64,000 bases of DNA, from the sequence record NC_015251.1; one strand, 5' to 3'. Under the pieces are notes generated by a model, which did not search any database, was not told the origin of the DNA, and saw only the letters and a program-made list of their open reading frames with translations. Below, piece after piece: positions 34,889 through 59,458 of this stretch. Position 1 is the stretch's first letter; each line of letters begins with the position of its first letter. Position numbers and translations under genes: made by a program.

Positions 34889-35209
34889 TTATTTCCTCAA
34901 GAAATCTTTAGTTTGACTACGGTCAATATTATAAGTCACATCACCATCATCCCAAACAGCTTTAGTAACATTCACATTAAACTTATCACCAACCTGAGCA
35001 GCACATCCACTACATCGTTTAGCTACATACTGGTCAATAACAATACCATCAGAAGTACGAACTACAATCCTTTGATGTTTATAACGCTTCTCAAAGGAAG
35101 TAACAACGACATTATCACTATAAGTATTTTCACTAATAACTTTAGGAAAATTAGGAAAACACCCAGACAACAATACCACACTAACAAGAGAAATACACCA
35201 TAGCTTCAT
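34889..35209 (-). CDS. lipoprotein, paralog of 32911-33231
   Basis: LLSGC lipobox; QRIVVRTSDG..DGDVTY vs QRISIKTESG..DGKVTY. Confidence 0.8.
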   Translation of the reverse strand: MKLWCISLVSVVLLSGCFPNFPKVISENTYSDNVVVTSFEKRYKHQRIVVRTSDGIVIDQYVAKRCSGCAAQVGDKFNVNVTKAVWDDGDVTYNIDRSQTKDFLRK

Positions 35210-35487
35210 ACAATATTCCTCGCTTGATAAGCGTCATAAGTATCTAGCCAATTGTAATGATCTAGACCATAACCATCAGCAACCAGAACAACACCCTCAA
35301 GAGGTTTCCAGTAATTGGCATCAGTAATAAGTTCCTCAACCATATTCCAATTCTCACTATGGATATAAGTCATCAGAGCTTGATGATAAAGCATATTAGT
35401 ATGGCTAGGAGTAGTTCGACTACGTTCTTCAGCAGCACCAATAAAAGCTTCCGGATTCTCTTTGATATATTGCAAAATAGTTTTCAT
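35206..35487 (-). CDS. hypothetical protein
   Basis: GGAG RBS. Confidence 0.7.
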   Translation of the reverse strand: MKTILQYIKENPEAFIGAAEERSRTTPSHTNMLYHQALMTYIHSENWNMVEELITDANYWKPLEGVVLVADGYGLDHYNWLDTYDAYQARNIV

Positions 35488-53717: not shown

Positions 53718-53749
53718 CTCCTTGATTCAGATTCCATAATACCAGAAAC

Positions 53750-53785
53750 AAAAATGGGATCAAGCATTATTTGCCCGATCCCATT
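53750..53785 (-). terminator. intrinsic terminator closing the late operon
   Basis: 14-bp stem AATGGGATCGGGCA/TGCTTGATCCCATT (two G-U pairs on minus) then T-tract. Confidence 0.8.
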
Positions 53786-53788
53786 AAA

Positions 53789-54121
53789 TTATTTCTTCAA
53801 CATACCATTCAGCTTATCAAAAGCCGCATTGAAGTTCTTTTGTGTGTCTTCTTTTGAACGACTAAACTTAACCTGACCGAATGTTTCGATAGGGCTAATG
53901 TTTGTCTTTGTCAAGTCAACATTTTCTTTAACCCAACGTTTCCATTCGTGTTGTTGAACCTCGTAATACTTTTTAGCATCACGGATCCCACCGGTTGTCA
54001 TACGACCTTGAACCGCACTCAACATAGAAATGTATTGGTTAACAATACGATTATAGTCTTTTGAGGTTTTCAAAACGTGTGCCTCATCAAGACGCTCGAA
54101 AAATTTACTGTTATCTAACAT
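53789..54121 (-). CDS. candidate internal head protein
   Basis: MLDNSKFFERLDEA has an LxE gp21-type site; in late operon. Confidence 0.65.
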   Translation of the reverse strand: MLDNSKFFERLDEAHVLKTSKDYNRIVNQYISMLSAVQGRMTTGGIRDAKKYYEVQQHEWKRWVKENVDLTKTNISPIETFGQVKFSRSKEDTQKNFNAAFDKLNGMLKK

Positions 54122-54122
54122 A

Positions 54123-54395
54123 TTACCCCCGAGCTTTCATAACTGCATCGACTACATCTTTGTTATTTGACATAGCAAACATAACAGCAGCTTTACCGAT
54201 TGCGGTCTTTTTGGTCAGTTGTTCACCTGACCATTTAGCCTTGGCATCAAAAGAACCAAATTTAAGTTCGTGTTTTTCGATCCAAGTATTGAAAAATTCT
54301 GCCAGTGAATCTTTAAATTGTTTGTTAATCAGATCTTTAGATTCACTCAGAAGAGATACATCCAGTTTTTCGTTCAACTCATTGAATTTTTTCAT
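54123..54395 (-). CDS. candidate internal head protein
   Basis: MKKFNELNE..LLSES resembles T4 IP leaders. Confidence 0.65.
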   Translation of the reverse strand: MKKFNELNEKLDVSLLSESKDLINKQFKDSLAEFFNTWIEKHELKFGSFDAKAKWSGEQLTKKTAIGKAAVMFAMSNNKDVVDAVMKARG

Positions 54396-54407
54396 TTTAT
54401 TTTTCCT

Positions 54408-54737
54408 TTAGTATCCGTAATTTTTGGCAGCAACTTCATCATAAACTTCAAACGTTTTGAACTTACCGGTTTCTTCATCGCCAAAAGAGTATACACCTTC
54501 TTTCAGGTTAATGGAAAGCTTTTTATACTCATCCCCGATTTTTATTTTAGCAAATTCACTATCACCAATCATAACTGGATACTCAACACCTTCCAATGTA
54601 AGCATAGTTCCCAACTGGGCAATAGATCCGGTTTGACGATCTGACGGACTTAGATTTTTAAAATTTACTTGTCCGGAAGTCGCTTTTGAACTAAACGCAT
54701 CCATAGCCTCGGTTAATTTCTGGTCATAGTCAAACAA
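54408..54737 (-). CDS. candidate internal head protein
   Basis: MFDYDQKLTEA has an LxE site. Confidence 0.65.
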   Translation of the reverse strand: MFDYDQKLTEAMDAFSSKATSGQVNFKNLSPSDRQTGSIAQLGTMLTLEGVEYPVMIGDSEFAKIKIGDEYKKLSINLKEGVYSFGDEETGKFKTFEVYDEVAAKNYGY

Positions 54738-54753
54738 TTGAACACCATCTACG

Positions 54754-55267
54754 TCATGACCTAAAATTGATTTTTGCTTCGTCCATCATTCCTTTAAAAT
54801 CCGGATGGATCATAAGAGATTCAAGCAAAGACTCCATCATGGCGCTTTTCTGACCAGCAGCCAGTTGTTTATGAGAGATCTTACCGCCAGTACCTTTAGG
54901 GAACACGGTTACTATGTTAATTTCTCGTCCTTTAACACTAGCAACTACCGAACGGTTTTCAGATTGGGAGTGGAACATGTAGGTTCCGCCTTTAATCTTA
55001 TTCGTTTCAGTATGCTTAACAATCTTACGGGCAAACTCTTTCCACTCTTCCGCCGACTTATCACCCGCTCGTTGATGTGCCCGAGCTTGTGCATGGATAG
55101 ACGCTTGAACTTTAAATGGCCCTACCCGCATAGTGACGGGTAATTTTGATTGTTTACTAAGATTAAATTCTTGGTCTTTGGTTAGTTCTACTTTTCGATT
55201 TCGACTTTCTGCCCGAACTTTCCTCGATTGATATGAGTCGAGAAAAGAAATGTTTGTTTTCTAACAT
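54754..55267 (-). CDS. candidate internal head protein with BECR/DUF4258-like domain (one-base frameshift near 55220)
   Basis: AAGGA RBS then MLENKHFFSRLISIEE; removing one A joins the ORF 54754-55131 (SIHAQARAHQR..INIVTVF). Confidence 0.55.
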
Positions 55268-55297
55268 ATTATTTTCCTTAAGGTGAGTCTTACCCTT

Positions 55298-55305
55298 TAT
55301 TTAGG
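55298..55305 (-). promoter_or_regulatory. putative late promoter CCTAAATA
   Basis: Same 8-mer as upstream of the spanins and tail fibre; about 30 nt before the ATG. Confidence 0.6.
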
Positions 55306-55616: not shown

Positions 55617-55644
55617 AGTATACACTAACGATTTATCATTTCAA
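55617..55644 (-). promoter_or_regulatory. early promoter
   Basis: TTGAAA-16-TATACT with TG. Confidence 0.6.
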
Positions 55645-56081: not shown

Positions 56082-56385
56082 TTATTCTTCCTCTTCATAC
56101 TCATCATCTTCGTCATTATTTCGGATATATGACATGGGATTATAACCTGACAGTGAATATCCCATCAAACTAATCAGCCATTGAATTTTTTCTTGGTCAT
56201 CTGTGACGATCTCAAGATCTTCACGATCTAGGGGTTCCCTCTACTTCGGAATGTTTACCAAGGATTTCACCAAAATATACATCAGACCCAATATATTTTT
56301 CAACTACTTCCGAGTCTTCTACAAAAAGACCTTCTACACTTCCACCACGACCGGCGTCCCAATAAAAACGATACAATTTCAACAT
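56082..56385 (-). CDS. conserved phage protein (one-base frameshift), not in ORF track
   Basis: MLKLYRFYWDAGRGGSVEGLF..VYFGEILGKHSEV; removing one C restores 100 aa. Confidence 0.65.
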
Positions 56386-58397: not shown

Positions 58398-58769
58398 TTA
58401 TTGTATGATATCGATAGATAAAGTCACTACATACCCCATAGCATTGTGGGTAACTTCAAGGGGGAATACCCCGACTAAATTTTCAAATCCAAGACGTACA
58501 TCTTTTTTATAAATAGACCCGCATATGTAATTTTTTGAAATTTCTGAAACCCACGTCTCAAAATATTCTGCATCTGATAGATTAACAACACGAAAAGTAA
58601 ATGGGTTTACATAAGATATACCTTTAAATGGTTTGTCTTTATATATTCCTTTTCCATACCAATTTCTACCAACCAAAACCGGAATATTAACTATTTGCGT
58701 TTCTATTTTTGGTCCTTCTATATACTCGATTTCTATAGACTTGTCTACAAATTTCAAAATTCCTCGCAT
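58398..58769 (-). CDS. hypothetical protein, weak T4 gp19 tail-tube-like motifs
   Basis: FETWV..YKKDV..LVGVFPLEV. Confidence 0.55.
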   Translation of the reverse strand: MRGILKFVDKSIEIEYIEGPKIETQIVNIPVLVGRNWYGKGIYKDKPFKGISYVNPFTFRVVNLSDAEYFETWVSEISKNYICGSIYKKDVRLGFENLVGVFPLEVTHNAMGYVVTLSIDIIQ

Positions 58770-59458
58770 TTACCAACCCTCCATGGGGAATTCCATATAC
58801 ACTTGAGCGTTACGGCGGATCTCATTACTGATCTTCTTTACACGGTCTGTATTGCGACTTACCCGACCAAACCAGCGCCAACCGTTACCAATTGCTTTAG
58901 AGCCAGTATGCCACGTTTGCCAATCGAATTCAAGTAGGGTGCGGTCTGGGGCTGTATGAAGAACCAGCTCACCGCTATCAATCTTCTGCAAAACTTCTTT
59001 ATGCCACTGACGATAAATCAGCTCACCGTCTGGAATTTGGCTAAATTCAGATTCACCTACTGCAAAATGAGTAGGGCAGATATCACCATTAACCAAACCA
59101 AGGATATGGCTAGAATGATAACGAGGATTGTCATAATCAGGTTGTCCCGCAGTGATGAAATGTTTTTCCAGTAGGGATATCTGGACGAGGAACATCATCA
59201 TGATGGAACCCCGGAATTGCAGGATACCACCCCGGCATAAGCATATGTACCCCGAGAGTCAAATACTACATCAGAGCCTTCCCAATCATCTGGAAGTTGA
59301 GAGATAAAGCTTCGGGTAATTGGGCCGCCATTCTCATAAGCAAAGTTTAGATCGCTATTGAAGAACATCGTTTCGTTTTTGATTTCATCATTCGTTACGT
59401 ATGATGCAAAAGTACCGCGATTTTTGAACTGGGAGTTGAAAGTTTTTTTGCTATTCAT
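58770..59458 (-). CDS. 2OG-Fe(II) oxygenase-like protein (two single-base frameshifts)
   Basis: Repaired read DSRVHMLMPGWYPAIPGFHHDDVPR..WHTG..WRWFGRVSR: HxD, distal His and Arg. Confidence 0.65.

Follow-up and report, generated by a model that had tools for sequence, protein, structure and literature searches.

Two systems described in bacteriophage T4 are among the closest to the genes considered here. Alt, an ADP-ribosyltransferase packaged in the head, is trimmed by the prohead protease gp21 and, once injected, acts ahead of phage transcription. The other system consists of the internal proteins (IPs) I–III, also called Ip1–3. Targeting of IPIII to the head needs no more than its 10 N-terminal residues, of which 4 and 7 function in targeting and 8 and 10 in processing, and gp21 cleaves after L/I-x-Glu (PMC9026906). 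In the T4 record (NC_000866), the leaders read MKTYQEFIAE followed by Ala in ipII and ipIII, and MKTFKEF...ITE followed by Ala in ipI. Ip1–3 inhibit distinct GmrSD variants (PMC3012670, PMC12373910): before 2025 Ip1 alone had a known target, and all three are now known to block type IV restriction enzymes. Here, we describe a gene cassette of the T4-like Aeromonas phage 65 (Straboviridae, Ishigurovirus). The analysed stretch of 64,000 nucleotides (nt), hereafter the window, corresponds to positions 124001–188000 of the phage 65 genome (NC_015251/GU459069), with 100% identity over the 1.7-kb stretch in question. All features of the cassette are on the minus strand (55305–53743 of the window; 177.8–179.3 kb of the genome), among early open reading frames (ORFs). 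We consider it probable that its three genes, A, B and C, form a late unit encoding internal head proteins of the T4 type. The description of the cassette proteins as additions to the known T4 internal-protein system appears substantially right; what is new is a cargo with a predicted toxin-like fold, drawn from a broad unannotated family.

Several features are common to the cassette and the T-even ip genes. One is the leader of about 10 residues, in which hydrophobic positions are followed by L/I-x-Glu; the leader of gene B, MKKFNELNE, is near MKTFKEF and MKTYQEFIAE. Another is the late expression, which is predicted for the cassette, together with the presence of gp21 and of conserved capsid cleavage sites. 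The last concerns the cargos, which are small, for the most part basic and unrelated to one another, and their loci, which are hypervariable and dispensable. On the other hand, the mature forms of A, B and C have no sequence similarity to Ip1–3, the leaders of A and C are longer and diverged, and A is a large (285 amino acids (aa)) two-domain protein with a predicted enzyme- or toxin-like fold. The cassette is also situated in the early region, and not at the ipI locus (57A/57B–gene 1) or the ipII/ipIII locus (by e); location at these loci is typical of the internal-protein family, not defining. Packaging, a part of the T4 system, is predicted for the cassette proteins. Alt provides a precedent for a packaged enzyme, not just an inhibitor, while its fold and chemistry are unrelated to those of the cassette proteins and its leader (MELITELF...) differs from the IP leader.

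The gene structure has to be clarified before the leaders are considered. In the reference record, four hypothetical genes (ST65p295 to ST65p292) are annotated at this place, and a 34-aa ORF is left unannotated; the first-pass annotation, made from the letters of the window, had likewise counted four small ORFs. Comparison of the gene calls with those of phages 65.2, avDM6, AS-zj and CC2 showed that the cassette consists of three genes. The 34-aa ORF (55267–55163), a 125-aa ORF (55131–54754) and a 109-aa ORF starting with TTG (54737–54408) are parts of a single gene A, which is intact in these four independent genomes (285 aa in the resequenced 65.2, 305 aa in avDM6, 291 aa in AS-zj and 304 aa in CC2). 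Since the three ORFs form one gene in 65.2 and the relatives, MFDYDQKLTEA, which had been taken for an N-terminus, is internal to gene A and is a frameshift artefact. Along the 1.7 kb, only three differences separate the window from 65.2, namely one substitution and two insertions of a single base each. Both insertions are in homopolymers (GGG vs GG near 55214, and AAAAA vs AAAA near 54775). In the phage 65 record, gene 22, an essential scaffold gene, is also broken, into the 29-aa ORF ST65p082 (MSIKDQLLSESKK...) and a remainder with a GTG start (L007:11535–12373, genome 63534–64372). Based on the homopolymer insertions and the split of gene 22 in the same record, the simplest reading of the split in gene A is a sequencing error, the alternative being a true defect of this stock. 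The record seems to hold several homopolymer frameshift errors. ST65p291, located directly downstream of the cassette, has 149 aa in the record vs 96 aa in 65.2. The start codon of gene C is found 1 nt past the stop codon of gene B, an arrangement for translational coupling.

The family to which gene A belongs is, in our judgement, the decisive evidence for capsid targeting. Close homologues of gene A are few and were found in Aeromonas phages only. When the conserved core was used in an exhaustive phmmer search, however, 56 representatives were obtained at E<1e-3, mostly of 130–180 aa. The tripeptide [LI]xE occurs within 25 residues of the N-terminus in 43 of the 63 family members. Moreover, the pattern M-x-x-h-x-x-h-h-x-E occupies exactly residues 1–10 in 20 of 60 A-family representatives, as compared with 5 of 3303 ATG-started ORFs of phage 65, a rate about 200 times the background; the Glu is followed by Ser in 11 of these 20. 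The leaders include MKTFKQFLEE, MKTFKEYIIE, MISYKEFIAE, MKKYSDFIAE, MLTFNQFLAE and MKSLKEYLEE. Three distant members, Aeh1p081 (MKSLADFLAE/S, where the slash marks the putative cut), VmeM-32_00152 (MIEFDDFLQE/S) and EniLVp02_0244 (...LLAE/S), are located in early-gene regions, directly or one gene downstream of TAAATA motifs. These three are annotated as hypothetical, and no mention of them was found in the searchable literature. Gene A itself corresponds to PHROG 18967/17629, of unknown function. The family is widespread and unannotated among T4-like phages, and its members are very probably capsid cargo.

The leaders of the cassette proteins themselves were then compared. The N-termini of A and C (MLENKHFFSRL vs MLDNSKFFERL) are identical at 7 of 11 positions, as had been noted at first pass, and the shared pattern M-L-[DE]-N-x-x-F-F-x-R-L is fitted by no other ORF of the phage 65 genome; beyond the leader, A and C are unrelated. 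The leaders of A and C are alike in each of the genomes read, and within a genome the two co-vary. They end in [LI]xE followed by Ser, Ala or Thr, except in A of Ceceduovirus, where FDE is found: for gene A, [LI]xE then Ser occurs in 7 of 10 close homologues and FDE in two, and for gene C, [LI]xE then Ala, Ser or Thr occurs in all 8 homologues read. Gene B has the aromatic or hydrophobic residues F4 and L7 that a T4-type leader requires. The pattern M.?K[KTR][FYW].[ED][FLIM] is fitted by only three phage 65 genes carrying a Shine-Dalgarno sequence, namely B, ST65p124 and ST65p142, all of which are located behind late promoters. In the A and C leaders, the hydrophobic or aromatic residues are F7 and F8, and the T4-type feature is found only by homology of position. 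The end of the A/C leader aligns with the Glu/Ser-x-Gln junction of distant T4-type leaders, as in LYE/SKQQSRN of a close relative vs LQE/SKQQSKN of Vibrio phage VmeM-32; the A/C leader is therefore best described as a lengthened, diverged form of the T4 leader, and not as a separate invention. Thus, of the distinct targeting signal proposed at first pass, the length and divergence of the A/C leader remain, while the signal itself appears to be a variant of the T4 one and gene B has the ordinary form. Each true leader of A, B and C does carry an LxE or IxE site. As a side observation, the 121-aa ST65p065 (L007:1687–2052, genome 53686–54051) starts with MLINNKLFKDTL, which is like the A/C leader (M-L-x-N-x-K-x-F), 47 nt behind a CTAAATA; this leader-like part leads straight into a transmembrane segment.

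The cassette is modular. Gene A is composed of a conserved core and a C-terminal domain that exists in at least two unrelated versions, one in 65 and AS-zj and another (PHROG 7322) in avDM6 and CC2, in disagreement with the phage phylogeny; ZPAH1-type proteins have no such domain. In P0013, the C-terminal domain following the A core is replaced by a gene-B-like domain (57% identity, E 2e-34). The alignment extends to the B leader region, and the tripeptide IDE/S is present at the junction. In this fusion, the A leader stands at the N-terminus and only a diverged remnant of the B leader is left at the junction, while stand-alone B has its own leader; this arrangement is as expected for a cargo addressed to the head. 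The gene order is A-B-C in 65 and avDM6, A-C-B in AS-zj, and A-C in CC2, in which B is absent; in the metagenomic relative L014, an A-B fusion, an extra gene and C are found. Despite this reshuffling, the late motif, the gene set and the terminator are common to Ishigurovirus, Ceceduovirus and a metagenomic relative. The extra gene of L014 (4824–5129) encodes a 101-aa protein without a leader; in the late cassette, it comes after the A-B fusion and before C. ST65p300 (54 aa, MLKLYRFYWDAGRGG...; window 56221–56385, minus strand) is its short homologue, and the phage 65 copy may be truncated.

The transcription signals are consistent with a late unit. CTAAATA is the published late-promoter consensus of the related phage Aeh1 (PMC1524935), and C(C)CTAAATA was found upstream of genes 24, 23, 22, 67, 20, 15 and 13 of phage 65. 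Genome-wide, CTAAATA followed by an ORF occurs at 37 sites, almost all of which are in the structural-gene region, and the cassette site has no counterpart from 134 to 226 kb of the genome. Here the motif is CCTAAATA, the gene A ATG is preceded by a good Shine-Dalgarno sequence, and ST65p296, upstream of the cassette, is a small membrane-protein ORF. avDM6, AS-zj, CC2 and one metagenomic relative have the motif in the corresponding position. The 8-mer alone does not exceed chance expectation (4 in the window vs 3.3 expected); the predicted late promoter is based on the right motif at the right distance, its conservation, and its identity with that before known late genes. The terminator closing the cassette has a free energy of −27.2 kcal/mol (z −7.4), none of 200 shuffled sequences was as stable, and it is also present in avDM6, AS-zj and CC2. 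The motif and the terminator, noted at first pass, were both confirmed in the sequence. The early-type promoter that overlaps the terminator would restart early transcription into ST65p291, and a like layout, terminator plus early promoter, was found after Aeh1p081. In Aeh1, the genes Aeh1p082 (an 85-aa membrane protein) and Aeh1p081 (the A-core homologue) follow a CTAAATA (L011:3152–3953, Aeh1 58613–59414) that is not among the 15 Aeh1 late promoters listed in 2006; with the terminator and early promoter behind them, they have the same insulated-cassette layout as in phage 65.

The protease on which processing would depend is also conserved. Phage 65 encodes a gp21 homologue (PF03420, E 7e-71), as well as gp22, gp67 and gp68. 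The gp23 cleavage site of T4, FLTE/AEIGGDHGY, aligns with VLTE/ANIVGDHGY of phage 65, and the gp24 site, LLRE/S, with LISE/S, which indicates that the gp21 specificity required by the leaders is conserved. The candidate gp21 sites in the cassette, IEE/S in A, LNE/K in B and LDE/A in C, are kept in most orthologues. From these data, we infer the late timing, packaging, cleavage and injection of A–C, as well as all of their activities, as follows. Late in infection, a gp55-type sigma factor would initiate transcription at CCTAAATA, and the strong terminator would stop the transcript. The leaders, with their hydrophobic or aromatic positions followed by [LI]-x-Glu, would dock A, B and C to the prohead scaffolding core, as those of T4 IPI–III do. 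The gp21 protease would then cut after the Glu, so that mature A is predicted to start at Ser17, mature B at about Lys10 and mature C at Ala14, and the basic mature proteins would remain with the DNA in the head and enter the next cell along with it. The first-pass proposal of a late operon of capsid-targeted, gp21-processed proteins inside the early array thus gained comparative support from the CTAAATA motif, the B leader, the A-family leaders and the gp21 sites, with the difference that the genes number three.

The same logic of targeting and cleavage would also hold if A, B and C were accessory proteins of the prohead core, like T4 gp67 and gp68, which would be targeted to the scaffold and degraded by gp21, with little or nothing injected. 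Several internal [LI]xE tripeptides in A are compatible with such degradation. However, the cassette varies and can be dispensed with (CC2 has no B, A may have another C-terminal domain or none, and the genes are reordered), it is far from the head-gene cluster, and the A core is compact, confidently folded and enzyme-like. For these reasons, accessory cargo fits better than a structural scaffold, and we regard the core-accessory explanation as quite unlikely.

The A core was examined at the level of structure. A first model of full-length gene A was poor outside the core, and its C-terminal domain had a predicted local distance difference test score (pLDDT) of <50. In contrast, an AlphaFold2 model of the core based on a 53-sequence alignment reached a mean pLDDT of 92. 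When this model was compared with 48,161 PDB representatives by VIA-align, the top 22 chains were nearly all toxins of the RelE/ParE superfamily (Z 4.6–6.6). The best was HigB2 (Z 6.6, root-mean-square deviation (rmsd) 3.0 Å over 83 residues), followed by PrpT (Z 6.4) and RelE (Z 5.9 and 5.8); YafQ, YoeB, ParE and the RelE-like domain of Cami1 were also matched, and T4 RegB (Z 4.4) and BrnT (Z 3.5) were found lower down. Foldseek against the PDB placed the same families on top at a non-significant level (best HigB2, probability 0.91, E 0.07), and a RegB-like BFVD entry matched the A core at E 0.03. The A core shares with these toxins (HigB2 5mje, PrpT 7ycs, RelE 2kc8/9g12, YafQ 4q2u, YoeB 2a6q and ParE 6xrw) a predicted beta-alpha-alpha-beta-beta-beta core, which superposes over 72–84 residues, most of each toxin, with an rmsd of about 3–4 Å, and it also has a basic surface and conserved His and Arg residues. 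Based on this consistent list of matches and the near-complete coverage of the small toxins, the assignment of a RelE/ParE-like fold is reasonable. The A core differs from the toxins in an extra N-terminal helix plus hairpin and C-terminal helices, in the lack of a profile-level sequence match, and in that no subfamily has catalytic residues to which those of the A core can be matched. Membership of DUF4258 was considered and rejected, there being no supporting Pfam match. In the alignment, His58 is invariant, and Arg66, Trp75, Ser100, Thr120 and the ITV(F/L)PKG strand are nearly invariant. With a pI of 9.9 the core is basic, in contrast to the acidic C-terminal domain (pI 4.5). Judging from the fold and the conservation, the A core may act on nucleic acid, with ribonucleolytic activity probable, and is most likely an endoribonuclease or another ribosome- or RNA-directed effector that would act at entry. 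The swappable acidic domain probably sets its target or regulation.

The fold of A raises the question of whether the cassette is a toxin-immunity or toxin–antitoxin-like module that acts independently of the capsid, with A as a RelE-like toxin and B and/or C as its neutraliser, in competition between phages or in host killing. The small genes immediately downstream of A, the coupling of B and C, and the fusion of a B-like domain to the A core in one relative, a hint of a functional link, would suit such a module. Nevertheless, in the Pfam, NCBIfam and PADLOC scans B and C matched no antitoxin family, and no recognisable antitoxin accompanies gene A. The distant A-core homologues Aeh1p081, VmeM-32_00152 and EniLVp02_0244 have no conserved neighbour and no B or C partner. 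Finally, A, B and C all bear leaders, which a cytoplasmic toxin–antitoxin pair would not need, and gene A is set behind a late motif with a putative capsid leader, unlike the bacterial toxin genes. We therefore consider a toxin–antitoxin-like module very improbable. As for B and C themselves, in Pfam, NCBIfam, PADLOC and PHROGs all three cassette proteins gave only sub-threshold noise or families of unknown function (PHROG 18704 for C), the ESM Atlas held no usable neighbour for B or C, and word-based homologue searches placed B and C in a few Aeromonas phages only. By analogy with T4 Ip1–3, our guess is that B and C are candidate inhibitors of host defences, the kind of role proposed at first pass for the cassette proteins, while the largest cassette protein, A, looks like an enzyme or toxin fold and not like a small inhibitor.

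Several observations weigh against the assignment of A, B and C as internal head proteins. The leaders of A and C have no aromatic residue at position 4 and are 3–6 residues longer than those of T4; A of Ceceduovirus carries FDE in place of [LI]xE; and the [LI]xE of gene B moves between genera, from LNE at 7–9 to LDE at 11–13 (shifted in Ceceduovirus). Furthermore, [LI]xE is present within the first 13–20 residues in 9–17% of phage 65 ORFs, and N-termini with the shape of capsid-targeting sequences arise by chance on early ORFs without a late promoter. On the side of the fold, the Z score is at most 6.6, in a range that VIA-align itself rates as middling. Of the 53 A-core sequences, 52 gave no match at E<=0.1 to the Pfam clan comprising RelE, ParE, HigB, YafQ, Gp49, BrnT and DUF4258 (the remaining one matched Gp49 at E 0.035), and neither NCBIfam nor the PDB sequences, searched with a profile, gave a match to the A core. 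In phage 65, no convincing terminator was found between the early-type promoter at 55644–55617 and the cassette; since this promoter is not clearly insulated from the cassette, early read-through into it is possible. If the frameshifts in gene A are real, phage 65 itself does not make A. Literature searches on phage 65 and its relatives found no report of virion proteomics, of N-terminal sequencing or of the timing of transcripts. Two further observations belong beside these. In the relative L014, a terminator is located directly before the late motif. Masking of the gene A ribosome site by RNA structure in an early read-through transcript, as for T4 gene e, was considered and is not supported: in 65, avDM6 and AS-zj, neither the late 5′ region nor that of the read-through transcript folds better than shuffled sequences (z −0.02 to −0.43).

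The chance occurrence of short [LI]xE motifs and of leader-shaped N-termini also bears on the explanation that the proteins are made late and are not packaged, acting in the producing cell in late control of host or RNA, in assembly or in lysis timing, so that the likeness of the leaders would have no targeting function. Late promoters of phage 65 also drive genes for non-virion proteins (spanins and uvsW), and T4 RegB, an RNase with a RelE-like fold that is not packaged, is a weak structural match to the A core; RegB is, like A, phage-encoded, whereas it is early, and its similarity is weaker than that of the bacterial toxins. This explanation does not account well for the precise T4-shaped 10-mer ending in Glu in a third of the distant A family, for the common, co-varying leaders of the unrelated A and C, or for P0013, in which the B-like domain has lost a leader of its own behind that of A. 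We hence judge it unlikely. The significance of the leaders comes from their position, their conservation across relatives and their occurrence throughout the A family, not from the motifs alone. One 93-aa early ORF of the window (35209–35487, minus strand) starts with MKTILQYIKEN, which is T4-leader-like; no late motif was found within 120 nt upstream, and it was set aside as a chance match. This ORF is useful as a negative control for searches by leader only.

Table 1. Positions in the window of the features of the phage 65 cassette and its surroundings
Feature	Position	Strand	Remarks
Early-type promoter for the small membrane ORFs ST65p297/296	55617..55644	-	TTGAAA-16-TATACT
Late (gp55-type) promoter motif CCTAAATA	55298..55305	-	30 nt upstream of gene A ATG; overlaps stop codon of ST65p296
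Gene A (ST65p295/294 + unannotated 34-aa ORF)	54408..55267	-	285 aa; one gene in relatives, three ORFs in this record
Gene A leader MLENKHFFSRLISIEE	55220..55267	-	Predicted gp21 cut after IEE; predicted mature end Ser17
Gene A conserved core	54772..55215	-	Full-length residues ~18–165; RelE/ParE-like fold (predicted); phmmer, AF2, VIA-align
Gene A variable acidic C-terminal domain	54408..54773	-	pI ~4.5; mosaic among relatives
Gene B (ST65p293)	54123..54395	-	90 aa; T4-type leader MKKFNELNE; mature form basic, pI 9.3
Gene C (ST65p292)	53789..54121	-	110 aa; leader MLDNSKFFERLDE then Ala; mature form basic, pI 9.8
Intrinsic terminator closing the cassette	53743..53785	-	Stem 53785–53753, 14 pairs, + T-tract
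Sigma-70-type (early) promoter for ST65p291	53736..53763	-	TTGATC-16-TATTAT + upstream TG; overlaps terminator

Outside the cassette, T4-type leaders were also noticed on other genes, of which the two in phage 65 are located beyond the window. ST65p124 (244 aa; L008:8890–9624, genome 106889–107623) starts with MSKTFSELFG and contains a DnaJ J-domain (PF00226, E 1.7e-10); a CCTAAATA of its own precedes it by 21 nt. It is located right after gene 1 and a 57A-like chaperone gene, a position syntenic with that of T4 ipI, and it looks like a packaged J-domain protein. In the Vibrio phage, VmeM-32_00154 (L013:4349–5401) combines the leader MKSTKQFLME with a J-domain behind a TAAATA motif. ST65p142 (282 aa; L008:20490–21338, genome 118489–119337), which adjoins hoc-1, starts with MKKFSEFIKLEE behind its own late motif. 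Its match to the P-loop kinase family Zeta_toxin (PF06414) scores 28.7 bits, which exceeds the cut-off. Here, too, a T4-type leader stands on a protein of toxin fold, the second such case. A 116-aa GNAT-like protein (L019:4642–4992) of a metagenomic T4-like contig, recognised by a Q..G.G motif, starts with MKSFIDFIKE/S. Its gene is immediately upstream of an A-core homologue with the leader MKTFKQFLEE, and the pair is found between cd- and pseT-like early genes.

As a direct consequence of this analysis, the gene structure of the phage 65 reference is corrected, and the sequence rule of late motif, leader and [LI]xE becomes usable outside the coliphages. In every record checked, the gene A family is designated as hypothetical, and the present data give the first hint of a RelE-fold enzyme as capsid cargo. 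If confirmed, the leaders would extend the set of natural signals for loading foreign proteins into T4-type heads, and the cargos would be candidate agents by which Aeromonas phages, a subject of study for phage therapy in aquaculture, shut off the host or counter its defences at the immediate-early stage. To our knowledge, no phage weapons other than internal proteins are already in the cell when phage transcription starts. We tentatively raise the possibility, which for the present is rather doubtful, that T4-like phages infecting Aeromonas, Vibrio and other aquatic hosts load their capsids beforehand, via one short leader, with enzymes of toxin or chaperone-cofactor fold, which would be injected and would cripple translation or defences of the host within seconds of infection, before phage genes are expressed. 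The putative RelE-like RNase of the gene A family, the zeta-toxin-like kinase ST65p142, the J-domain proteins of the ST65p124 family and the GNAT-like metagenomic neighbour would be examples. If this is true, the internal proteins would turn from passive restriction inhibitors into an arsenal of injected catalytic effectors derived from the toxins of toxin–antitoxin systems.

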